Shown: positions 5,701 to 21,801 of the stretch, one piece after another
Numbering within the stretch: the first letter of the stretch is position 1
Layout of the letters: each line of letters begins with the position of its first letter
The notes under the pieces: model-generated
Seen by the model: only the letters and a program-made list of their open reading frames with translations
The model's database searches: none
Told to the model about the DNA's origin: nothing
Translations under genes and position numbers: made by a program
NCBI GenBank assembly: GCA_002269645.1
Contig: NIVC01001548.1
Coordinates: forward strand, 206,739-270,738
Direction of reading: 5' to 3'
DNA from: Macrostomum lignano
Taxonomy: Eukaryota
Length of the DNA: 64,000 bases

Positions 5701-8700
5701 GTTTGATTCACTGTACTCCTACTGGTCCTTGGTTTGATTCACTGTACTCCTACTGGTCCTTGGTTCGATTCACTGTACTCCTACTGGTCCTTGGTTTGAT
5801 TCACTGTACTCCTACTGGTCCTTGGTTTGATTCACTGTACTCCTACTGGTCCTTGGTTTGATTCACTGTACTCCTACTGGTCCTTGGTTCGATTCACTGT
5901 ACTCCTACTGGTCCTTGGTTTGATTCACTGTACTCCTACTGGTCGTTGGTTCGATTCACTGTACTCCTACTGGTCCTTGGTTTGATTCACTGTACTCCTA
6001 CTGGTCCTTGGTTCGATTCACTGTACTCCTACTGGTCCTTGGTTTGATTCACTGTACTCCTACTGGTCCTTGGTTTGATTCACTGTACTCCTATTCGGTC
6101 CTTGGTTCGATTCACTGTACTTCTATTTGGTCCTTGGTTCGATTCCTTGTACTCCAACAGGTCCTTGGTTCGATTCCTTGTACTCCAACAGGTCCTTGGT
6201 TCGATTCCTTGTACTCCAACAGGTCCTTGGTTCGATTCCTTGTACTCCAACAGGTCCTTGGTTCGATTCCCTGTACTCCTATTTGGTCCTTGGTTCGATT
6301 CCCTATACTCCTACTGGTCCTTGGTTCGATTACCTGTAGTTCTAGAGGGTGAAGTACTTTTTTAGTCCTTTGTTTTTCACTACACTCACAGCGGTTTTTG
6401 GCCCGATCCGCGTTGCTCCCAGTGGTTAAATTGGTCTTTGGTCCGCGACACTGCCATGCCTTCCGCTATTGCCACAATCCATTTCACTGCAAAGCCAGTT
6501 TGGCAAGCGTTTCCCAGGGTGAATAAGCGCCAGTGCAGCGCCAGTGTAGTTGGACTGGACACCCGCCCTTCTGCAGCCGCTTCTAGCAATGCCTGAAACA
6601 GCTGCGATCCATGCAGCCTTGCAAGTGGGCAAGGCGAGAGGGCCAGGAAACTGGATTCTGCTTTTCCATCTCTCTCTCTCCCTCTCGTTCTCCATCAGTG
6701 CTCAGGTGAGTCCGATGAGGACAATGGAGTAGTTTTAGTCAGTTCGCTTCCCTGGCCTGGGCTCACTGTGTGCTCAGTGGAGAGCACCAACAACGGAACC
6801 TCCTGCAGCCTGCATGGCCTCTGGCCTCATCTTAATAGTGCTTCCTGCAGCCTCCTCCTGCCGCTTTGCCGCTTGCAAAGAGTGAATTAAAACGGCCCCT
6901 ATTTGATGGCAGGAGTACTGGTAGGTTGAAGTTGATTCAACCAGAATTCTAATAATATACATGTATGGGCTTGCATGTATTCGTATTATGCACCTTGTAT
7001 AAATAGCAGGAGAACTTTTGTGTGGGACTCAGGAGCTGTTGTTTGGTTTATGGCCATCTGGGACTGCTGCTGGTGCTGTGTTGGGGGGGGGGAATTGGAA
7101 TCGCATGCCTATTCAGTTTACTATAAATAAATTGATATGTTGGAGTTGGGAGAAAGCGCAGCATCCAAACTGCAGCCAAGTTGAACATGGCATGGGTGAC
7201 AGCTCAAGGTGAGAGGGACTGTCAAGAAGAGAAATGCGGGTTTAAGCAGCTATAGCCCTCTGTCTATCACTCCTAACCCTAGCCCTAGCTATAGCCCTCT
7301 GTCTATCACTAATAACCCTAGCCCTAGCTATAGCCCTCTTTCTATCACTCCTAACCCTAGCCCTAGCTATAGCCCTCTTTCTATCACTCCTAACCCTAGC
7401 CCTAGCTATAGCCCTCTGTCTATCACTCCTAACCCTAGCCCTAGCTATAGCCCTCTGTCTATCACTCCTAACCCTAGCCCTAGCCCTAGCCCTAGCTATA
7501 GCCCTCTATCACTCCTAAGCCTAGCCCTAGCTATAGCCCTCTGTCTATCACTCCTAACCCTAGCCCTAGCCCAAGCCGTAACTCTAGCCCTAGCCCTAGC
7601 CCTAGCCCTAGCCCTAGCCCTAGCCCTAGCCCTAGCCCTAGCCCTAGCCCTAGCCGCCCTAGCCCTGGCCATAGCCATAGCCATAGCCTTAGCCCTAGCC
7701 CTAGCTCTAGCCCTGCCGTAATTACTTTTAGCGCTCTGCATGAAGCGTAAATAAAGCGTAAAGCGCATGAAGCATGTTAGTCGTAAATTTCTGCCGCAGA
7801 GTGTTAACAAAATTTTTCCCAAACGCATTTACTGCTTTTGGTCTCTGAAAGATAGAGTGACGAAGCTGAAGAAAAAAAATTGACTTTTAGAGTGCTTTCC
7901 CGAGCCAGAGTCTTGAGCGCCGAGAGGCTCGTTGGAGAGCCGGAACCGCTTCAGTGCGATGCGCCTATCGGGAGGCCGGGTTTGCTGAACCGACTGGGTG
8001 AGCGGCTGCACCTTTGCTTTGCCGAGGCCCCCTGCTGGGCTAATGGCCCGCAGTGGATCAATAATTGATTGCTGGGGACTGGGAAAATGGAAGGAGGCCA
8101 TGCGGCGCTGATGGCGGAGAGAAACTGCAGCTGGGACCGCCGAACAGATGATGGCATGTCGTGCGCTCACTTTCTACGTACTGGCGCTTTGGAGAGAGCC
8201 CAGTTTCTAAGCCTCATCAACTTCATTCTCGCTCTCAGATCAAATGTCTCCTTTTCTCTATATTTCTGTCTCCCCAACCGGATAGAACAACGTGCTCATG
8301 CATGCATTTTGTTACAGTGCTTTAGTACAAGACCATTGTTCCTATGTACAAGACCATTGTTCCTATGTACAAGACCATTGTTCCTATGTACAAGACCATT
8401 GTTCCTATGTACAAGACCATTGTTACTATGTACAAGACCATTGTTCCTATGTACAAGACCATTGTTCCTATGTACAAGACCATTGTTCCTATGTACAAGA
8501 CCATTGTTCCTATGTACAAGACCCTTCCCAGTTTCTAGCACAGGATCATATGTGGACAGTCCGTTCTCCATGTAAGTTCTGTGGACCTGCAACCCTCAGA
8601 ACCCACGAGCAGGGTGGCGGCTTCCGGATGGTGTGCGAGCAGGTCTCTCACCACCCGCCAATCAGCGCCTTCCACGCCGAGTCCTCGGACAGCGCCTGGC

Positions 8701-9255
8701 GCTTCCACGGCAGCGTGACGCCCCGCCTCAGCTTCTGGGGAAAATCCGTGGAGGTCTGCCCGAAGGGCTGGGTGACGCTGGAGTTTCCCAGGCGCGGCGA
8801 GGTGTACACCTGGCAGAATGTGCAGTGCAAAATACACAACATCATCATTGGGAAGCTGTGGATTGAGCATGTAAGAAGGGACTGCACTTCTCGGAGGTGC
8901 TACATGTAGTGCACTTTAAATGCCGAGATGGGCCAAAGTGACTAATTAAAAATTTTTCACGCCCAACTGCAGTTCGGCGACATGACAATCACCTGCCACG
9001 GCAGCGGCCGCAAGGCTGAGCTCAGCTGGCACCCGGCATCCTGGCTCAGCCCCAGCCACCACCGGGTTGACGGCTACGTGTTCGATGAGGATGGCAGGAA
9101 AGTTCGGGCCTTGTACGGCAAGTGGCTTGACGCCATGTTCAGGTGAGCCTGTCTGCCTGTCTGCCTGCCTACCTGCCTGCCTGTCTGCCTTCCCGCCTGT
9201 CTGCCTGCCTGCCCGCCTGCCTGCCCGCCTGCCTACCTGCCTGCCCGCCTGCCTA

Positions 9256-9301
<46 letters not shown>

Positions 9302-9417
9302 TGCCTGCCTGCCTACCTGCCTGCCCGCCTGCCTGCCTGCCTGCCTACCTGCCTGCCCGCCTGCCTGCCTGCCTGCCTGTCTGCCCGCCTGTCTGCCTGC
9401 CTGCCTGCCTGCCCGCC

Positions 9418-9487
<70 letters not shown>

Positions 9488-10663
9488 ACTGTCTGTCTAT
9501 GTGGCTGTCTGCCTGTCTGCGTGTCATTCTCGCTAGACTCGCCACAGTAGGAGCGGTCCGCTGCGTGTGGAAACACTATGAGCGCCGCAGAGATGAAGAG
9601 TCGCTAAGAGCGGCAAACCAAAGCAGGAGCGGAGGCTGGGGGAGCTGCTTCCCGCTGCTCCATCCTCACTATTTAGCCAGCAGAAGCCGTGCAGGTGGCG
9701 GCTAGGCAATGAATTCAGCTGGGCCGGATTGAACCAGTTCGGGCTTTGAGAGGCGCCCCAGCACCGGCTGTCACCTGCTTTACCTGAGCTGGTCTGGGAG
9801 AGCTCAGCTTATAGATTAGCAAGCCCCCAGCGCGTGCTAATTCTCGAATCCATTCCGTTCCCGGGGATTCGGTTAGTCCATTACCCATATGAGTTTTGAC
9901 ATAGGGGGTGATCTGGAGAGACGGAAATAGAGAAGGCTGGGAGTGCAGCATGCTCGAATTCTAGCACCATCCACCTTAGTTCTACTTTAAGTAATGTGAA
10001 TGGCGGCTGAGAGAATTTGCCGCCCGGCTTTTCCATAGCCTGCCGGTGGAGGCCTGGAAGGAGCACAAGCGCAGCGGCGGCAGCCACCAATCGTCGCGTC
10101 GTCGCCACCATCAGCAGCGCGAAGTATCCTCATCGCCTCGCAACGGCAGCCCTAAGCTGCGCCCATCGAGTTTCATCGCCGCCAACAGCATCAGCAGCGG
10201 CTCAGCCGGCGACGAATCGCCGTCCAGGAAGGCAGCCAGCGACAGCGAGGACGGCCAGACGGGCCCGCCGAGTCGCGGGTCAGCGGCCGACCTGCGGCTG
10301 CCCGGCCAGCGGCTGCTCTGGCAGCTGGTGCAGCGGCCGCAGGGCTGCGAGCGCTACTACAGCTTCACCCGCTTCGCCATGCAGCTCAACGACTGCTCGG
10401 ACGCCGAACTGATGGCGCGCCTGCCGCCTACCGACGCTCGCCGGAAGCCTGACGTGCGCGCCCTCGAGGCCGGTGACCTTGCGCTGGCGCAGGCAGAGAA
10501 GTCGCGCCTAGAAGAGAAGCAGCGCCGGCGCCGCGCTCAGTCGGACTCCGACGGCGTCTGGTTCCGCAGGTGGCGGAACCCGCACACCGGCAAGGACGGC
10601 GACTGGCGCTTCACGGGCGAATACTGGGCGCGCGACTGGGCCCGCTGCCCGGATATTTACTGA
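2763..10663 (+). CDS. OSBPL2: Oxysterol-binding protein-related protein, ORP1/ORP2 type (ORD only, ~479 aa)
   Basis: Exons 2763-2827, 3420-3495, 4914-5048, 5137-5234, 8600-8870, 8973-9142, 10039-10663; all GT-AG with consistent phases. Motifs: [46 protein letters not shown] signature [36 protein letters not shown], terminal CPDIY. Confidence 0.92.
3788..3925. repeat. Degenerate 9-bp repeat (gtcaggaaw)n in OSBP intron 2
   Basis: Read directly. Confidence 0.8.
5287..6337. repeat. 31-32-bp minisatellite (ggtccttggttcgattcactgtactcctact), ~33 copies, OSBP intron 4
   Basis: Tandem units read directly; contains GGTTCGATTC(C). Confidence 0.95.
7248..7713. repeat. Telomere-like (CCCTAG)n / cctaaccctag compound repeat in OSBP intron 4
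   Basis: Runs of gcccta with interspersed cctaaccc. Confidence 0.9.
8324..8523. repeat. 21-bp minisatellite (tacaagaccattgttcctatg), ~9 copies
   Basis: Read directly. Confidence 0.95.
9147..9520. repeat. (CCTG)n/(TCTG)n compound microsatellite in OSBP intron 6
   Basis: Read directly. Confidence 0.95.
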
Positions 10664-11439: not shown

Positions 11440-14400
11440 TCACACGCTGCTGATGGTTTGAAGGCGAAGCTGCTGCTCAAATTGCTGCTGTTGCTGCTGC
11501 GGCAGATGCAGCGGCGGCTGCACGGTCGTCGGGCGCGACTCCCGCCTGGCCGCGGCCGTGGCGGTGCGGCGCCAGAGCGCGGCAAGCAGTCGGCAGATCG
11601 CGGGCAGCAGCCAGGTGGTGGCCAGGCTGAGGACCAGCATGTAGGCCATGAGCACAGGGGCGCAGGCGGCCGGCGGCATGACGCGGCCGAAGTCGGGCCG
11701 GCCGTACAGGGCTGGCAAGATGCAGCGGCCGGTGAGCCCGGTTAGCAGGTTGCCGATGAGGAAGTAGGCCAGGCCGTGCTGGTCCACCAGCTGCAGGAAG
11801 GGGGACGCCGGCGGGGGAGGTGGCTGGGACAGGTGCTCGGACTGGTGCTCCCGCTGGTGCTCGCGCAGGTGCACATTGTTGGAGCTGACCGGGTAGGGGC
11901 CGGCCAGGGCCGCAAACAGGCAGGACGCGAAGGCGCAGGCGGCCATGTAGGCGCAGCAGAAGCCGAGGATCCACGCCACGTAGGCGGCGTTGCCCAGGCG
12001 CCGGGACTCCGGCAGGGCAAGCCCGGCAGCTGGCAGGACGCGGAGCGCCAGGGTGGCGGCGGCCACCGCTGCGCACCAGCCGGTCACGCGGCCGACATCA
12101 GCTGGCCGACGGCTGGCTAGGACGGGCAGGGCAAGACGGCCGACCTGCAGCGCCAGCAGGTAGAGGCAGTAAAGGCCCAGACAGGCCACCAGGCCCTCTC
12201 GGTTGGCCTCGAAGAAGCCGGCATCGCGTCTGGCGGTCAGAGCGGCCGCGGCCGCCGCCGCCGGAGCTTGTGCATCGGCCGCGGATTCTGGCCGGACGAT
12301 GGTGATGGCCAGCCGGCCGACCGGGCCAAGGGCCACCTCGTAGGCGGCCAACAGGAGACAGGCGGGCAGCGCCGGCGGCAGGCGCGACTGTGGCGGCAGC
12401 AGCAGCAGCTCGGTAGCGGAGCCCACCATCTTCACTGCGGCAAGCGTAAAGAACACATTCCAGTCCCGGCCGTACTCCTCCACGGCCTGGGCGGTGGAGG
12501 CAGAGTCTGGGATGAATGCATCCATTGTTTATCCCACACTCCCCATCCTCGCTCCCACACTCCTTATCCCCGCTCCCACACTCCTTATCCCCGCTCACAC
12601 ACTCCTTATCCCCGCTCACACACTCCTTATCCCCGCTCAAACACTCCTTATCCCCGCTCACACACTCCTTATCCCCGCTCACACACTCCTTATCCCCGCT
12701 CTCACACTCCTTATCCCCGCTCACACACTTCTTATCCCCGCTCACACACTCCTTATCCCCGCTTACACACTCCTTATCCCCGCTCACACTCCTTATCCCC
12801 GCTCACACTCCTTATCCCCGCTCACACTCCTTATCCCCGCTTACACACTCCTTATCCCCGCTCTCATACTCCTTATCCCCGCTTACACACTCCTTATCCC
12901 CGCTCATACACTCCTTATCCCCGCTCACACACTCCTTATCCCCGCTCACACACTCCTTATCCCCGCTCACACACTCCTTATCCCCGCTCACACACTCCTT
13001 ATCCCCGCTCACACACTCCTTATCCCCGCTCACACACTCCCCGCTCACAAACTCCTTATCCCCGCTCACACACTCCTTATCTCCGCTCACACACTCCCCG
13101 CTCACACACTCCTTATCCCCGCTCACACACTCCTTATCCCCGCTCACACACTCCTTATCTCCGCTCACACACTCCTTATCCCCGCTCACACACTTCTTAT
13201 CTCCGCTCACACACTCCTTATCCCCGCTCACACACTCCCCGCTCACACACTCCTTATCCCCGCTCCCACACTCCTTGGCCCCGCTCCCACACTTCTTATC
13301 TCCGCTCCCACACTCCTTATCCTCGCCCCCACACACCGTACCTGATCGGGTGCCACCGCCAGCCGCACCAGTCCGCAGCCGGTCAGCAGCAGGCACAGTA
13401 CGGTCTGCTTCAGCAGCGCCGCCTGCCGCTGGTGCCGGTTGAGCGCCCGAGCCCGGCAGGTGGGCGCCGTCAGGCCCATCAGAAAGACGAAGCAGCCGAG
13501 GCCGACATCCATCAGGCCGGTGCCAAAGGTGCGCGTCTTGCCGAATGGAAGCCGAAAACAGGGTAAGTCCCTGGCGGAGCAGCAGAGGGGCGGAGGCTTT
13601 GAGATTTTGTTGGCTCAATGACGATGCATTTGGGAAGGTGGCAAACCCTAGACTAGAACAGTCACGGACCAATCAGAATCTGGGACGGAAGTGAACCAAT
13701 CAGAATATGGGACGGAAGCGGACCAATCAGAATGTGGGACAGTCACGGACCAATCAGAATCTGGGACAGTCACGGACCAATCAGAATCTGAGAAAGTCAC
13801 GGACCAATCAGAATCTGGGACAGTCACGGACCAATCAGAATCTGAGAAAGTCACGGACCAATCAGAATCTGGGACAGTCACGGACCAATCAGAATCTGAG
13901 AAAGTCACGGACCAATCAGAATCTGGGACAGTCACGGACCAATCAGAATCTGAAAGTCACGGACAAACCCGAATCTAGGACGGAAGCGAACCAATCAGAA
14001 TCTAGGACGGAAGCGGACCAATCAGTACCTGGCGCTAAAGTGAGTCAATCAGTTTGGGAGAGTCACACACACCTGGCCAGAATGCAGGCGCATGTTGGCA
14101 AATAGATGAGGCCCCGAAACTCGGTGATGAAGCGCGCTCGGCCGGCCTGCTCGGCGCTGAACGCGGGCTCCCCGAGTTCCGCCGGCAGCCACCAGAGCCA
14201 CTGTCCCCGCCGCCGCCGGGCCAGCAGTCTGGCCAGGGCGGCCACATTGACCGCCACGGCGACGACAGCCGAGACTGCCACAGGCACTGCGTAGCTGGCA
14301 GCCGGAAAGGTGACGATGCACAGGCAGAAGGCGCTGGTGATGAGGCCGTGGTCAAGCAGCAGGTGGCCAAGGCGGCCAGCGCGGTTCGCCAGGCCGGGCG

Positions 14401-14581
14401 CCAGACACAGCAGGGCATTCCGGCTGCTCAGGCCCAGCACGAGGGGCAGCACGGCGACAAAGACTTCCCAGATGGCGCAGCGGACGGGCTCGGTGTGGTG
14501 CTTGAAGCCCGGCACCAGCGGGTGGTAGGGCGAGAACTCGCCAACCACCTTCTGCTGCTGCGGAGCCTGGCCCGCCACAGC
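11440..14581 (-). CDS. PIGW: GPI inositol acyltransferase PIG-W/GWT1 (start codon not found in the genomic sequence)
   Basis: Exons 14581-14073, 13570-13342, 12486-11440 join in frame. Motifs: FITEFRGLIYLPTCACILARDLPCFRLPFGKTRTFGTGLMDVGLGCFVF, EEYGRDWNVFFTL, NREGL, SRRLGNAAYVAW, NQHGLAYFLIGNLLTGL-like (VDQHGLAYFLIGNLLTG). Confidence 0.88.
12533..13330. repeat. 21-bp minisatellite (cacactccttatccccgctca), ~38 copies, fills the last PIGW intron
   Basis: Read directly. Confidence 0.95.
13662..14025. repeat. 27-bp minisatellite (ggaccaatcagaatctgggacagtcac) in a PIGW intron
   Basis: Read directly. Confidence 0.92.
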
Positions 14582-14867
14582 CTGGATGGGGAGTTTGAAC
14601 AGGCCTAGTTACTGCTGGGGATTTAACGGGCAGCTAACAAACATGAACTAACAAAACTGAACAAAAACATAAACAAAACACAGAATTTTTGACTATAGGG
14701 ACGAGAACAAACAAAGGAATCTCATTGTTGTTTAAACGGTTTAGTGATCAGGGAAGCCCCAAGCGCTTTCTTCTGGTTTCCTATCAGAGAATCCCCTGAG
14801 TATTATATAAACGACTCGAATCGAACTAACAGGGGAATACCCTAGGGTCTATGTGTTTTTAAACGAG

Positions 14868-15262
14868 TACCAATCAGGGAATCCCTAAGTGTTCTAAAAC
14901 GAAACCAATCAGGGAATCCCTAAGTGTTCTGAGAATCAATCAGGGAATCCCTAAGTGTTCTGATAATCAATCAGGGAATCCCCAAGTGCTCCAAAACGAG
15001 AATCAATCAGGAAATAACCAAGTCTTCAAAAACGAAACCAATCAGGGAATCCCCAAGTGTTCTGAGAATCAATCAGGGAATGTTCAAGAGTTTTAAAACG
15101 AGAATCAACCAGGGAATCCCTAAGTGTTCTAAAACGAGAATCAACCAGGGAATCCCTAAGTGTTCTAAAACGAGAATCAACCAGGGAATCCCTAAGTGTT
15201 CTAAAACGAGAAACCAACCAGGGAATCCCCAAGTGTTCTAAAACGAGAAACCAATCAGGGAA
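14868..15262. repeat. 32-36-bp minisatellite with core aatcagggaatccctaagtgttct
   Basis: Read directly. Confidence 0.88.
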
Positions 15263-15856
15263 TCAAACAAAAAGCAAGGCCAACAGAAGGTCGTGAATCG
15301 TGATGAGGGGAATACAAAATCCATATATATATTTAGTAGAAGCGATAAGAAATGGCGGGTAACACCGAACTCCAAGAGGCATAAAGTAGGCGATTACAAA
15401 ATCCGATCTAAAGAAAAAACTGCATGACTTGGCGCAGATTAACTGGGAAAAATGGAGCGGTTTTAGAGAATTTTTCAGTTTGCGGAAGTAGAATTAAAAT
15501 ATGGAAAATTACCGGACTGCAAAGATCAGAATGAATAGGCGGAATATTTATAAATATTAAATTATATGAAGTTCCTACAACCGACTAACAATAAGTATAA
15601 ACTATAAAACGATTTGCAATTCTAAATTATTAAAGCAAACAAACTCTAACTGCCTAGCCCAGCTTGGAGAGCAATATTACATGGATGAATTTGTTTAACT
15701 AAATAGCAGTACAAAACCGATACAAAAGGAAAGATTGGTCAATTCAATCGAATGAAAAAACACCTTTTACCAATGTTTAAATAATACGAGCGTATTAGAA
15801 TTGTACGGCGGATATTAGTATATTTAAATCAACGGCGTCAGACATGCAAGCTATAG

Positions 15857-16060
15857 AGACAGTCAACAAGCCTGTCCCAGCCAATCAGAGACAGTCAACA
15901 AGCTATTCATACTGTCCCAGCCAATCAGAGACAGTCAACAAGCTATTCATACTGTCCCAGCCAATCAGAGACAGTCAAAAAGCTATTCATACTGTCCCAG
16001 CCAATCAGAGACAGTCAAAAATCTAGTCCCACTGTCCCAGCCAATCAGAGACAGTCACCA
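15857..16060. repeat. 40-bp minisatellite (gagacagtcaacaagctattcatactgtcccagccaatca), ~5 copies, just after the CYB5R stop
   Basis: Read directly. Confidence 0.9.
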
Positions 16061-16064
16061 GCAA

Positions 16065-19000
16065 TCAGTAGGAGAACAGCATATCGGGCTTGAATCCGAG
16101 CTTCTCCAGGCTGGGCATGCAGGCAAAGTTGATCATAGGCGGCGGGCCGCACATCAGCACCAGGGTGTCCTCGCCAGGCGGGAACAGGTGCTCGCCGATC
16201 ATTTCGGAGTTGACAAAGCCCGAGCTGTAGCGCCAGTCCTCGGGCGGCCGGTCTAGGGTGTACCAGAGCTTGAACTGGCTCGGTTTCGAGTCGCGCAGCT
16301 GCTCGAGCTCGTCGCGCAGCAGGATGTCCTGCTCGGTCTGATTGGCGAATAGCAGCGCCAGCTGAGTCTTATCCGTGTCCGCGTGGCCCAGCACCTGCTG
16401 GATGAGCTGGTACATCGGCGTGATGCCCGTCCCGCCGGCGATCATGGCAACCCGGCGGACCCGCTTAGCAACCGGCGGCGACTTCTTGTCCGGCCGGATC
16501 TGGAACTGGCCGCTGCCTTCGTACACCAGCCGGCCGGAGGGGCCGCGCACGTCAACGCAGTCGCCCTCCTTCAGCGACTCGAGGTACTGCGACATTTTGC
16601 CACCGTCTGGGAACTTCGGGTGCACGTTCTGGAGAGAGAGAGACGGGGAGGGGAGAGTTGAAAATGCTAAACTGTAGCTACTAGTCTAGAAGCATCGAGG
16701 AAGCCAACCAAGACTGGACGGCAGAGACTTTGCCAGATTTCAATTTCTATTAAAACTGTCTACTATAAGTAGCTTACACGCGAATATGCTGGGTGGCCGA
16801 TCTACTTATTATAGTATCTTAATACAGCTAACTACAACTGACCCAGTTAACCTCCTATGGATGGCTCCTATATTGCAAACCCCAAGCTGTGACTCATACT
16901 TCACCATATGTATATATAGAGAGAGCCTCTCACCTTGAAGTAGACCTTAATAACCAGATCAAAGTGGCCCTTCTGCTCGTCCGAAGTTGTCGGCGTGTAC
17001 GGCCGGACAACGGGATCGCCGTCGATGCGGGCGTGCAGGTAGATGTGCTGGCCGACCGGCAGGCCGAGCACGTGGTCCCGGCTGGGCAGGGCGAAGCGGA
17101 ACCGCCTGGTGTCGTGGCTGATGATCTCCTTGTCAACCAGGCGCAACGGATATTTCACGTTGGCGTCCTGCAGTGTCACCAGGCGTTTGGGCTTGCGCGA
17201 ACCCCAGAACAGCTTGTAGACGGCCACGGACAGCAGGATGATGGCGCCGCCGCCACCGACTATCAGCATCTGTGCGATTGTTAGCGAGCAGTTAATTGTG
17301 CAAGTAGATAGCAACAGATTGGGGAATACTATTTCCCCCCTGCATCAATTCGGGAATTCCCAAGTGTTTTCCTCTGCATCAATCAGGGAATTCCCAAGTG
17401 TTTTCCTCTGCATCAATTCGGGAATTCCCAAGTGTTTTCCTCTGTATCAATCAGGGAATTCCCAAGTGTTTTCCTCTGCATCAATCAGGGAATTCCCAAG
17501 TGTTTTCCTTTGCATTAATTAAGGAATTCCCAAGTGTTTTCCTCTGCATCAATCAGGGAATTCCCAAGTGTTTTCCTCTGCATCAATCAGGGAATTTCCT
17601 GTTGTTTTCTCCTGCATCAATAAGGGGATTACCAGCTGCTTTCTCAGCTTCTCCCATAATTCTATAACTTTATTTGAATACCATTTAAAAATAGCATTCT
17701 TTGGTACATGCCATGTCAATGGTAAATACTTATTTAGTCTTCATTGATTTTTAAAGTATAACTTTTACACTCGTAAAAGTAAAAAGCCTTTTTCCAAATG
17801 TTACTTTTTCTATACAAAAAATTATAAAAATGTCTTTACAGTTAATGCACATTAAATGATAAATTGCAAATATTATAATTAAACACTGAAACATGGGCTC
17901 TCAAAACTACATTAGCACATTCCCAAAAACACATCAAAAAGGACAAAATTTGTACATTTTAATTAGCCCAATCTAGAGGTACAAGTAAAACAAACTCTCA
18001 AAAATGAACTTAAACTAACCCTAATCAAACTAATAATAACTAATATGATTAAAACAAATAACAAAAGTGAGATTATATTAATATTATGGAAAAAATATTT
18101 TGATACTCAATAGATTATATATAAGTCCTTAAAAATAGCTTTGTTGAACTCATTGTTAAAGTCATTGTTGCATTATTAAATAAAATAGTAAAAAAACACA
18201 AAAAGCATTTTAAAAGTCTGAGTTGACTGATTTGCAATTTTTTGTTTCACTTTTTTCATTTATAAACAATTAGTTTTTAGACTTGAAGACCTTAGAATGG
18301 AAGGCTAATTTTTTTACTACTTACAAAACAGAAAGTATTCTATGTTTAAATTTTTATTTTATTTAAAAAGACAAAAGATTTCTAAGGATTTCTAAGTTTT
18401 TCTAAAAAAAACTTGCAAAAATTCATACTAATTTAAAGTGCAAAGTTTGCCAGCAAACATCCATATACTAAAAATGGTCTATCGTCTTTTTCTAAAAGTA
18501 AATATACTGCTAATTCCTTGTTGCAAAATAACCTTTAAGTTGTTTTCTTTCATTTAAATATCAACTTGAATAATATTAGTATATATAATATGGCTATATT
18601 TAGACTTGAATTTTTTGGGTAAAAAATGGTATCAGAAAATGTGAACCCGGCATCTAAATCAAATGCTTCCTATAGGCTTAAGAGACAATAAAGAACAATG
18701 AAATTATACTTATTATGTATTATTGTGGCATGTATGCAAGAAAAAGAATTTTCCAAATTGCTTCAGTTCAGTAGAAGCTAAGTAAAATACAATTTTCCAA
18801 TCCTTATGGGAATTCTAATGTGTTATCCAGCTTCCAAATTAGATGCTTCCTATAGGCTTATGAGGCAACAAAGAACAATGAAATTATACTTAAATATGTA
18901 TCATTGTGGCATATATGCAGGAAAAAAGAATTTTCCAAATTGCTTCAGTAGAAGCTGAGTAAAATGCATCTTTACAATAATTTGTATGCTTAAATAATAA

Positions 19001-20076
19001 ACTTATGTTGAATACAGTATTTATTGCAAATGAACTCTAAAAAATACATATTTTCAATAGTAACAAAAGTGATGAACAAATAAACCCTCAAAAAGAATAC
19101 TAAATGTGTTATAGCATTATAGAATGTAATATTATAAGATACTTAAAGTTAATAAATACAATATTAGAGTTTTTTTATCATTTTTATGAGTCATTTTAGT
19201 CATAATTTAATTTACCATTTTAACAAATCATTTTATTAAAAATAAGGCTATACAATTGAATAATTTGTGCTTTTATAGATATTTCTAACTTTTATAAACT
19301 CAAAAAAAATTATTTTATAGCTTTATTGTTTTCAAACTGCCAAAAAAACGAATGTTAAAAAAACTTGCTACTAATTTTTGGATTTTACCAGAAGCATTCT
19401 TAATCTTAGATAAATACTTTGGTGTATATAGCAAATAGATAGCAAGGAAGCAAGGAATTATAGGTATAGCACTATATAAATATTCTAATTATTTGCAAAA
19501 GAGTAGTAGGCCTATTCTTATATGTATTATAATTAAGCTGCTATGCAAATAAGCAGGTAATTGTTGGCATGGGACCATGGGAATAAGCACTGCCTATTAA
19601 CTAGTGCAAAAACATAAATTTCATGTTTTATTTGTAAATAAAGTAAAAAAACAATTAAATTATTATAGCACAAAAACACACAAAATAGAATAACAGTTCT
19701 TTAATATAACAAGAGGACTCGATTAATTTAAAAATACAAAACTTAGAAAGCAAGTTGTTTCATTTTTTGGCTTTAATTAATATTCAACCCTAGCTTAGAA
19801 ATATACTAAAATTTGAATGACAACAATATAGAAGATTCTAATAATCTTATCATGTCAATGATTTATAATAGAAAATAGAAAAAAAAATAATAATAGAAAA
19901 AAAGCAAAGCAAACTGCACGAAACAATAAAGTTTTTTTAGCTAGAACCAAAACTGTAACTGTAAGCAAGCAAGACATTTACATACTAAATTATAGATGCA
20001 GTTTATACTACTCGTAATTCTAATTGTCGCATTACAACATAGCATCACGTGAAACGCTTACCGTTGTGTTAACCAT
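16065..20076 (-). CDS. CYB5R3: NADH-cytochrome b5 reductase, membrane-anchored form (~304 aa)
   Basis: Exons 17269-16934 and 16628-16065 (firm), plus a likely first micro-exon 20076-20062 (ATG GTT AAC ACA ACG|GTAAG). Motifs: [57 protein letters not shown]. Confidence 0.93.
17338..17600. repeat. 34-bp minisatellite (tgcatcaatcagggaattcccaagtgttttcctc), ~7 copies
   Basis: Read directly. Confidence 0.92.
18661..18970. repeat. Diverged ~180-bp tandem duplication inside an AT-rich intron segment
   Basis: atgcttcctataggctta...aaagaacaatgaaattatact...ttttccaaattgcttcag occurs at ~18663 and ~18843. Confidence 0.85.
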
Positions 20077-21801
20077 GACGTGTGCTATTCTATTTGGGAA
20101 AAGCTGAAATCTCCCAGTTATTGAGTCAACGACCAACGTTTGAAAAAAGCGACCAGACCAGTATTAAATTGTTATTAAATTTTTTCAAAGTCAGTTTTCG
20201 TGGAAAAAAGTATCGTTTAAACAAACTGTTTAATTAATATATCCTCATTTTAAACAGGGTTAAAAAAATTTAGTAAACTTTCTGCTGTTAGTTTTTTATT
20301 CCAAGACTAATCGTATTCGTTTTGTAAATTTTGACTACCGTTCAATTAAGGCGAAAGATTTCGTTAATGAAATTCAAAAGTCTTCGTCAACTAGTAAAAT
20401 CCCACCACTGTTTCTAACCTAGGACGACTGAAGTAATCTATATATAATCCAATTAAGTAGTCCTTGTTTCTAACGAAGCCCTGCACGAAGCCCTTTTTCA
20501 TTACTTCTATTTTTCTCTACCATGTCAACAATTTCACATATGGCAACGTCAGGGATCGACGACAATAGAACAAACATATGCGAAATAAGCTAGTAAAAAG
20601 TAAAACAGTCTTCGTATGTAGGTGTTGTTAGTTGAGAATAAGCGTGCCTATTCGGCGCATAAAATATTGTATTGGGGGCTGGAGTGAAAGTGTTGATCAG
20701 CTCTTGAGAGCAATGGAGGAAATACAGCCAGAGCCCTCATATCGCGGAGCAAAACTGCAGCTTATGTCTGGAAAAACTCTAGCTTTTATCATTCGGTGTC
20801 GGTGCATAGCCAGCACTACGTAAAACTGACCCGATTCGTATTCTATGCGAGCTATTCTCCACAAGAGAAGTTAAATAATAAGCATCTGTTGGTATTATTA
20901 TTACACGTATAAACACGTACACGTACACGTAAATGTAAAGTGCTTGCCTTTTCAAAATAAAGTACATCGACATCGGATGCATGTACAAATCAGTAACTTC
21001 GCGTGGACGTCCGGAATATTTTACACATATATGAACGCTGGGCATCTACAAATAGTACTACGCTTACGCACGTACATGTATAAAAACTTTTTCGTCATAG
21101 AGAAGATCGCATATGCACAATTTTTCATGCCCATCTGATGTTTCAAACTACTACTCGTATATACTGCTTCGGAAAGGATCATTCATAAAGCTGAAAACAC
21201 ATAATTAGCTCGTGACCTAAGAAGCCATGCCTGCATTACATCGCTTCACCAAGGACTTATAAATCCTTGGCTTCCATTTGTGTAAGACATGCGTACATGC
21301 GGACCATGCAGCATGGTTTATATATCGATCGTTGATACGTACGTTCGTATTAAAAATAGTTTAAGGATTTACATTTTACTGAGGAAATAGATCATAACTG
21401 TGGAAAGAAGACCAGCACCAGCAAAAAGTACAGTAATTTATACACAGGATCGCAGAAAATAGCCATGCCAGTATAATACCACACGATTAGACTGCAATAA
21501 CGATAAATAAAAATATACGAGCTTATAAAGGGTATGAGACCAGTAAAAATGCACATAGAACATTTTTGGGGCGAAGCATTATATACAGATTCCTTTCTGA
21601 AGCATAAAATCAGGCTATAATAGTGTTATTGTAATTCCACGCTGATCCTACCACGCGATAAACTGCATGGCGAGTCAAAGTAAGATCGTTTACGCGTATC
21701 ATATACTGGGCCAAAAGAGGCTACTTTACTCATTTTTATCTTGTTCTTGGCATACTGTGCATGTGAATTCACGACACAGAATTGAGAGAGAATCGAGCAG
21801 C

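Follow-up and report, generated by a model that had tools for sequence, protein, structure and literature searches.

A PIGW/GWT1 gene of Macrostomum lignano encodes no genomic initiator codon and probably takes its start AUG from the spliced leader

Initiation at an AUG carried by the spliced leader has been described in Schistosoma mansoni, where more than 40 cDNAs need it (Cheng et al. 2006, via PMC9851317). For Macrostomum lignano, the trans-splicing account in PMC8629364 gives a single leader of 35 nt, CGGTCTCTTACTGCGAAGACTCAATTTATTGCATG, that ends in ATG, and an acceptor motif of [T/C]TNCAG. The share of trans-spliced genes is put at 30–39% (PMC8629364, PMC5730564), with genes conserved with human reported as enriched among them (Wasik 2015; PMC5730564; PMC8629364), and the donor consensus in the literature is GT[G/A]AG. 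Leader-AUG initiation has also been acknowledged as an issue in Macrostomum annotation (PMC10468722). In what follows, these reports are the source for the terminal ATG of the leader, for the splice motifs of acceptor and donor and for initiation at leader AUGs in flatworms, and the first and last of these points agree, in the M. lignano leader (PMC8629364) and the S. mansoni cDNAs (PMC9851317), with an earlier note on this locus, which had stated that flatworm leaders end in an AUG usable as initiator.

The window analysed is a stretch of 64 kb of M. lignano contig NIVC01001548.1, and all positions are those of the window. The gene at the locus, on the minus strand, is PIGW/GWT1 (BOX15_Mlig008849g3), with the following features (a slash marks a splice boundary):

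14073..14581, minus strand: coding exon 1, 509 nt, encoding AVAGQAPQQQKVVGEF...CILA plus 2 nt of an Arg codon
14071..14072, minus strand: GT donor of intron 1 (CAG/GTGTGT)
13342..13570, minus strand: exon 2, with the conserved D/K motif region and the first genomic in-frame ATG
11440..12486, minus strand: exon 3 of the gene model, ending at the stop codon

The codon split by intron 1 resumes in exon 2 at 13570 (ILAR/DLPCFRLPFGKTRTFGTGLMDVG). The model equals GenBank PAA66598.1 over 588 aa, exon 1 being identical to the 5′ part of that entry. The protein matches Pfam GWT1 (PF06423) at 210.7 bits (cut-off 29.6; E = 5e-62), and residues 61–536 cover profile positions 41–434 of 437, a significant match over the full length of the family. 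Exon 2 aligns with residues 122–266 of yeast Gwt1 (8xij), with ILARD...FGK of PIGW opposite ILAVD...FAK of yeast (8xij_A), so that the D and K at the positions of D145 and K155 are both conserved. These two residues of yeast Gwt1 are reportedly essential.

Exon 1 opens at an acceptor, ctccccatccAG/GCT, with the AG at 14583–14582 and 14581 as first exon base (minus-strand context ...CTCCCCATCCAG/GCTGTGGCG). The features around this junction are:

14582..14593, minus strand: proposed 3′ acceptor for the spliced leader, CTCCCCATCCAG, a match to TNCAG with 75% pyrimidine in the 20 nt upstream
14609..14611, minus strand: in-frame TAA stop, 30 nt upstream of the acceptor, which closes the frame in the genome and is conserved in paralog g4
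14594..14720, minus strand: T-rich, outron-like stretch (an outron being the 5′ segment lost in trans-splicing)
14536..14568, minus strand: six further AG dinucleotides, mostly of CAG glutamine codons, after each of which the exon bases follow in frame 0

The frame is thus closed upstream, and downstream it contains no in-frame ATG for 189 codons: the three ATGs of exon 1 (14418, 14247 and 14093) are all out of frame, and the first Met is residue 190 (ATG at 13512–13510), in the GLMDVG of exon 2. Each of these points, namely the acceptor at 14581, the TAA 30 nt upstream and a Met-free first exon with the first Met about 190 residues in, had been read from the letters by the earlier note and was recovered here. 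In a protein this poor in Met (7 in 594 residues), 189 codons in a row without one would be no great surprise by chance. The weight lies on three features taken together: the upstream stop, an acceptor placed precisely where the open frame begins, and the conserved N-terminal transmembrane sequence. No genomic in-frame AUG can yield the conserved N-terminus, and the PIGW/GWT1 gene Mlig008849 encodes no initiator codon in the genome.

On sequence comparison, the N-terminus is shown to be already complete: the Pfam GWT1 profile is covered from position 41, and the stretch preceding the conserved motif exceeds that of yeast Gwt1 by about 24 aa. Furthermore, dN/dS of exon 1 is 0.29 against the ortholog of a related species and about 0.3 between the M. 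lignano copies; exon 1 is coding and, judged by these ratios, under purifying selection. These observations bear on a start at Met190, which is the first in-frame ATG of PIGW and would give a protein without the first four or so transmembrane helices. Such a start is extremely unlikely: it would discard an exon that is under selection and alignable to the N-terminal region of GWT1 proteins, it lies beyond the counterparts of yeast D145 and K155, which would both be lost, and it is preceded by the three out-of-frame ATGs of exon 1.

The acceptor fits five of the six positions of the published motif, with A rather than T/C at position −6. The 139 nt ahead of it (14582–14720) are 42% T, in line with the T-rich, outron-like upstream region of the earlier note. 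The leader ATG joined at 14581 would read M-AVAGQ... in frame and with no intervening stop, giving a GWT1 protein of 595 aa, which is the M-A-V-A-G-Q that the earlier note had predicted. Joined at the six further AGs, whose first exon bases are 14566, 14557, 14554, 14551, 14548 and 14536, it would still read PIGW, of 580–590 aa, whereas at the upstream acceptors from 14720 to 14604 it would give dead-end peptides of 1 to 94 aa, none of them PIGW. Among the seven frame-0 AGs down to 14536, TNCAG with a pyrimidine tract is unique to 14581. A search of the 64-kb window for a leader RNA gene, allowing even two mismatches, found none.

These properties support the spliced-leader reading of the PIGW start. 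PIGW probably takes its start AUG from a spliced leader trans-spliced at 14581 or at a neighbouring in-frame CAG. The pre-mRNA would be trans-spliced at CTCCCCATCCAG/, with the exon starting at 14581, or at an in-frame CAG just downstream; the acceptor would receive the 35-nt leader, whose last three bases are AUG; and this AUG would act as initiator of M-AVAGQAPQQQKVVGEF..., the full-length multi-pass inositol acyltransferase of 595 aa. Both the addition of the leader at the PIGW acceptor and the start of the ribosome at its AUG are what we infer. The junction predicted for joining at 14581 is ...TTATTGCATG/GCTGTGGCGGGCCAG; the alternative predicted junctions would join the leader to GCTCCGCAGCAG or CAGCAGAAGGTG.

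The RNA-seq-based GenBank annotation flags both full-length paralog copies (g3 and g4) as 5′-partial and gives neither an upstream exon. The annotated CDS starts 18 nt past the acceptor in g3, the copy in the window, and 6 nt past it in g4; 5′-partial models with starts just past the acceptor are expected if leader-bearing reads failed end-to-end mapping, according to the method given in PMC5730564. As these starts lie 6 and 18 nt beyond the acceptor and not at it, the exact trans-splice site is putative. A query with the N-terminal 105 aa for a leader-PIGW product among RNA-derived contigs gave nine candidates, none of which scored, in an index that missed the identical GenBank protein; a query with the protein of exons 1–2 returned only genomic ORFs of the related species, and since the same index again missed the identical GenBank protein both negatives say little. 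The name Mlig008849 was not found in the paper texts and supplements searched.

Near-cognate codons in good context count against the leader-AUG reading: the GTG of codon 2 (14578–14576), with G at both −3 and +4, and an in-frame CTG (14602–14600). One of them could serve as start on an mRNA with its 5′ end upstream of 14581, which would either escape trans-splicing or receive a leader at an AG further upstream, for example 14614 (CCCGTT...CCAG/CAGTA), a site that resembles the acceptor-like one upstream of the related species' ATG. We consider this improbable. In both copies the annotated transcripts stop short of the region upstream of the acceptor, and the mRNA would bear an upstream ORF of 11 codons (ATG at 14644) as well as out-of-frame ATGs. 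Initiation at non-AUG codons is inefficient, and M. lignano has an AUG-bearing leader to hand.

A genomic ATG could also be supplied in cis. The same-strand gene upstream is CYB5R (BOX15_Mlig023370g1), our model of which reproduces PAA66599.1 exactly:

16065..16628, minus strand: last exon and stop of CYB5R, 1483 nt from the PIGW acceptor
20062..20076, minus strand: CYB5R mini-exon 1, ATGGTTAACACAACG, with phase-0 donor GTAAGC
14849..15264, unstranded: 36-bp minisatellite of 12 copies with core CCAATCAG, in the CYB5R–PIGW spacer, 270–680 nt upstream of the acceptor

The spacer from the CYB5R stop to the PIGW acceptor contains 10 candidate exons of the form ATG.../GT in phase 0, none of which (0/10) has the donor consensus GT[G/A]AG. 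The earlier note had seen no convincing phase-0 ATG exon in this interval, which holds, and its weak candidate, ATGGATTTT/GTATTC, is present at 15324 without the donor consensus. The only consensus-quality ATG donor upstream on the minus strand is that of CYB5R mini-exon 1, and this phase-0 donor in cis is a further point against the leader-AUG reading. Spliced from ATGGTTAACACAACG/GTAAGC (20076–20062) to 14581, it would give MVNTT-AVAGQ... in frame, with a 5′ exon common to two neighbouring genes on the same strand and 1.5 kb apart; the phase of the donor was checked through the exact reconstruction of PAA66599.1, and the PIGW acceptor is likewise of phase 0. However, the whole CYB5R gene (5.5 kb) would need to be skipped, the annotated transcripts of both paralog copies carry no upstream exon, the transcriptional-unit prefixes of the two genes differ (Mlig023370 versus Mlig008849), and PIGW of the related species begins, at the corresponding position, with an ATG of its own. 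A cis-spliced exon as the source of the ATG is hence hardly likely, the spacer candidates such as that at 15324 being much weaker still.

The CYB5R–PIGW spacer of 1483 nt shrinks to about 880 nt when 602 nt of tandem repeats are subtracted. This is below the repeat-adjusted threshold of 1 kb that PMC8629364 gives for operon spacing, yet the transcriptional-unit prefixes differ (see above), so that CYB5R and PIGW are no more than a candidate operon.

Comparison of g3 with g4 was of no use in finding conserved upstream exons: outside the repeat arrays the copies are 92–99% identical, so that conservation does not discriminate, and in the 200 nt upstream they differ in just 6 of 204 aligned columns. 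For the related species, DNA comparison over the 5′ flank was likewise set aside, the sequence upstream of the GEF codons being too diverged for base-level homology. Codon differences between the two copies number 9 synonymous and 8 nonsynonymous, and each copy has an intact frame of 594 codons. Mlig008849 also exists in a third copy, in fragments at the end of a contig. Two other GWT1 lineages of M. lignano (Mlig032094 and Mlig023648) have ordinary genomic ATGs and complete annotations.

These lineages could cover the function, so that efficient translation of Mlig008849 is not required, which is another point against the leader-AUG reading. Mlig008849 might accordingly be a decaying or poorly translated paralog whose missing ATG is a disabling lesion, as the complete, ATG-bearing state of the other two lineages and the fragmented third copy would allow. 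Decay is nevertheless highly improbable given the intact 594-codon frame in both full-length copies, the retention of the D145 and K155 positions, the dN/dS ratios of exon 1 and the inclusion of Mlig008849 in the RNA-based annotation.

In the related species, the ortholog (on Logan contigs L004 and L005) carries an ATG encoded in the genome, and a TGA in the same frame lies 12 nt ahead of that ATG. The 13 residues of this ortholog from Met to GEF equal in number the leader-Met plus AVAGQAPQQQKVV. As a genomic ATG is present both in this species and in Mlig032094 and Mlig023648, its absence from the Mlig008849 lineage is probably a derived state. With somewhat better than even confidence, we propose that the M. 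lignano lineage lost the genomic start codon of PIGW, a conserved gene for a housekeeping enzyme, and that the spliced leader took over initiation exactly at the position of the ancestral Met. The in-frame CAG (Gln) codons of the N-terminal poly-Q tract may have offered ready-made acceptors.

The PIGW case reveals no new mechanism, as leader-supplied initiation is already known in flatworms from the Schistosoma work (Cheng et al. 2006, via PMC9851317). What the comparison adds as new is that, by sequence, the corresponding position in the related species still has an ATG in the genome. PIGW would offer a clean, testable case of a gene from an essential pathway, GPI-anchor biosynthesis, for which genome sequence does not suffice to predict the protein; a leader-supplied start would explain its 5′-partial label in GenBank, and Macrostomum annotation pipelines should add the leader ATG for ORF calling. 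Together with the genomic ATG of the related species, PIGW may serve as a small evolutionary model of how start codons become leader-supplied. If the proposed loss is true, translation of PIGW would depend entirely on trans-splicing, and comparison of close Macrostomum species would provide a datable example of evolving dependence on the leader AUG.

Compared with the rest of the GWT1/PIGW family (PF06423; yeast Gwt1 8xij and 8xik), the gene shares the full-length GWT1 domain, the ILA(R/V)D...F(G/A)K motif and the multi-pass membrane architecture, but the other members examined, among them Mlig032094, Mlig023648 and the related-species ortholog, have a genomic ATG. With M. lignano trans-splicing as described (Wasik 2015; Wudarski 2017, PMC5730564; Ustyantsev & Berezikov 2021, PMC8629364) it would share the same 35-nt leader, assumed here, and its acceptor resembles [T/C]TNCAG, PIGW also being a gene conserved with human; these papers (Wasik 2015, PMC5730564, PMC8629364), however, are not known to analyse the leader AUG as a start codon, and PIGW stands in their annotation as a 5′-partial CDS. 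Among the closest counterparts are the slORFs of Schistosoma mansoni (Cheng et al. 2006). Those cases rest on cDNAs and reporter mRNAs, whereas that of PIGW, in the free-living M. lignano, is inferred from genome sequence; the two share a leader ending in AUG, an acceptor that coincides with the opening codon of a conserved ORF and the lack of a genomic in-frame AUG, so that the leader AUG would be needed for a protein in the correct frame.

The spliced PIGW model, encoded on the minus strand, is 100% identical in a protein search to the GenBank entry 'hypothetical protein BOX15_Mlig008849g3, partial [Macrostomum lignano]', and the contig carrying that entry, NIVC01001548.1 (assembly GCA_002269645.1), includes a stretch whose sequence equals that of the reverse-complemented window; the DNA is thus that of the free-living flatworm M. 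lignano. The three-exon model consists of 594 codons plus stop, agrees with the GenBank protein across its 588 residues and matches Pfam GWT1 (PF06423) at E = 5e-62.

14611-14609, minus strand: in-frame TAA stop, 30 nt 5′ of the PIGW acceptor
14583-14582, minus strand: PIGW acceptor AG, first exon base 14581
14581-14073, minus strand: PIGW exon 1 (509 nt), donor CAG/GTGTGT at 14073/14072
13570-13342, minus strand: PIGW exon 2 of the spliced gene model
12486-11440, minus strand: PIGW exon 3 of the spliced gene model

At the exon 1 boundary (minus strand, ...TAACTAGGCCTGTTCAAACTCCCCATCCAG/GCTGTGGCGGGCCAGGCTCCGCAGCAGCAG...), the frame leading into the conserved domain is open between the TAA and the exon 1 donor. 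None of the three ATGs in exon 1 is in frame, and the earliest Met is residue 190, within GLMDVG. The earlier note had described exactly this arrangement, with a first exon opening at 14581, a TAA 30 nt upstream and no Met before exon 2, and the minus-strand reading upholds it throughout. Initiation at a near-cognate codon of this frame (GTG codon 2, or CTG at 14602) is given a slim chance.

We take D145 and K155 of yeast Gwt1 to be essential residues. In the alignment to the yeast structure (PDB 8xij), where PIGW residue 146 is aligned with yeast residue 122, the D and K at these positions are kept. Judged from sequence, PIGW lacks no N-terminal exon, because the Pfam match begins at residue 61 (profile position 41) and because the worm protein is ~24 residues longer than yeast Gwt1, a complete protein, ahead of the conserved ILA-D...K motif. 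A start at Met190 is extremely improbable.

Upstream exons were enumerated by taking, between the CYB5R stop (16065) and the acceptor, every ATG whose frame runs without a stop to a phase-0 GT. None of the ten candidate exons in this spacer, ATGGATTTT/GTATTC from the earlier note among them, has the M. lignano consensus donor GT[G/A]AG (consensus as given in PMC8629364), so the note's view that a convincing phase-0 ATG exon is absent there was sustained. The sole candidate of consensus quality lies farther upstream, in CYB5R itself:

20076-20062, minus strand: CYB5R mini-exon 1 (ATGGTTAACACAACG/GTAAGC), ATG at 20076, 5 codons (MVNTT), donor GTAAGC

Joined to 14581, it would give MVNTT-AVAGQ in frame. 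Its phase-0 donor is verified by a rebuilt CYB5R product, 304 aa preceded by 28 residues of 5′ read-through, which matches GenBank PAA66599.1 without a difference. The GenBank annotation shows no sign of a splice from this mini-exon to PIGW, and the transcriptional-unit prefixes of the two genes differ; that a cis-spliced ATG exon supplies the PIGW start is considered improbable. In PAA66599.1 (332 aa, 'partial'; 20062-20160, minus strand) the first 28 residues are translated 5′ UTR, and CYB5R translation most likely begins with the ATG at 20076, within the MVNTT mini-exon; counted from there the product is 304 aa, equal in length to the UniRef entry.

About 30 minisatellite arrays (periods 19-54 bp) occur in the window, four of them in or around PIGW and CYB5R:

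13658-14032: array, period 27 bp
14849-15264: array, period 36 bp
15872-16057: array, period 40 bp
17340-17634: array, period 34 bp

These four share a CCAATCAG or CAATCAG core, their units differing elsewhere; on the gene strand the core is CTGATTGG, which is CCAAT box-like, and it may reflect shared origin or repeated binding sites. Within PIGW intron 2, 39 copies of a 21-bp minisatellite (12535-13334) produce spurious ORFs of 229-432 aa in either orientation. An oxysterol-binding-protein-like gene has exons at 8292-10663 (plus strand) that converge on the PIGW 3′ end, and the older UniRef models A0A1I8I985 and A0A1I8G5Z2 overrun the true C-terminus into the antisense of this region.

The single published M. 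lignano leader, CGGTCTCTTACTGCGAAGACTCAATTTATTGCATG, is present on 30-39% of genes, and the trans-splice acceptor motif is [T/C]TNCAG (PMC8629364 and PMC5730564). The site at 14581, ATCCAG, fits TNCAG and is preceded by a tract of 75% pyrimidine. Every AG from 14720 to 14536 was tabulated. Joined at the eight AGs upstream of 14581, the leader ATG yields peptides of 1-94 aa, none of them PIGW; joined at 14581 or at the six AGs downstream (14566, 14557, 14554, 14551, 14548 and 14536), it is always in frame 0 and yields PIGW proteins of 580-595 aa. Thus the leader ATG is in frame whichever nearby site is used, and at 14581 it reads in frame into PIGW, as the earlier note had stated. The leader would be trans-spliced at 14581 and translation would initiate at its AUG, which we regard as the likely PIGW start; the small probability left over by this reading and its rivals together falls to some other explanation. 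The note's observation is confirmed and its interpretation supported.

The M. lignano gene models in GenBank come from an assembly guided by RNA-seq, in which reads bearing the leader were trimmed and aligned apart from the bulk reads, the latter being mapped end-to-end (PMC5730564). Both full-length Mlig008849 copies (g3 in the window and g4 on NIVC01000495.1) are labelled 'partial', their annotated CDS beginning 18 nt (g3) and 6 nt (g4) downstream of the acceptor with nothing annotated upstream. That two models, each independent of the other, both end at one strong acceptor is the pattern expected from trans-splicing at that site but does not prove it. A third copy begins at a contig end (L003:1-544, NIVC01001256.1), hence without exon 1, and the annotation splits it into two partial genes, Mlig022311g1 and Mlig008849g1. 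Two strongly divergent GWT1/PIGW lineages, at 38-39% identity to the window gene, are also found in M. lignano (loci L006, NIVC01000459.1, and L007, NIVC01000048.1): Mlig032094 (550 aa) and Mlig023648/Mlig008311 (593 and 579 aa), both with ordinary genomic ATG starts and annotated complete. The gene ID Mlig008849 does not occur in the searchable paper texts. A word-indexed protein search with N-terminal PIGW queries gave no RNA-derived contig of the gene, but it also missed the 100% identical GenBank protein, so such a blank is no sign of absence.

An exhaustive HMMER search recovered an exon 1 ortholog (59% amino-acid identity) on two short Logan contigs of a related species (runs SRR31628391 and SRR31628434), which are genomic because a GTAGGT intron comes after ...CILAR. 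This ortholog has a genomic ATG, with an in-frame TGA 12 nt upstream, and 13 residues (SQQQQQSLEERAV) ahead of the conserved GEF; M. lignano PIGW likewise has 13 between the proposed leader-derived Met and GEF (AVAGQAPQQQKVV). Between the two, dN is 0.35, dS 1.20 and dN/dS 0.29 for exon 1; g3 and g4 differ at 9 synonymous and 8 nonsynonymous codons, the first 106 codons being identical. By the ortholog, dN/dS and the copy comparison, exon 1 is therefore under constraint as coding sequence, and the N-terminus is expected to start at the acceptor. That Mlig008849 is instead a decaying paralog is very unlikely, and its ATG-less state is probably derived. In the second Logan contig of the related species (L005, 676-680), two extra C relative to L004 (616-618; CACCACCCCTGC versus CACCACCTGC) shift the exon 1 frame (protein P0050), and could stem from allelic variation, a pseudogene paralog or misassembly.

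Reported flatworm leaders all end in AUG (PMC12582326). Cheng et al. 2006 showed that a flatworm leader AUG is able to initiate translation; 28% of trans-spliced S. mansoni transcripts have it in frame, and >40 cDNAs require it (as summarised in PMC9851317). The leader-AUG mechanism is therefore already established. The evidence here supports PIGW as one more well-defined case, from a second flatworm, and adds a comparative angle.
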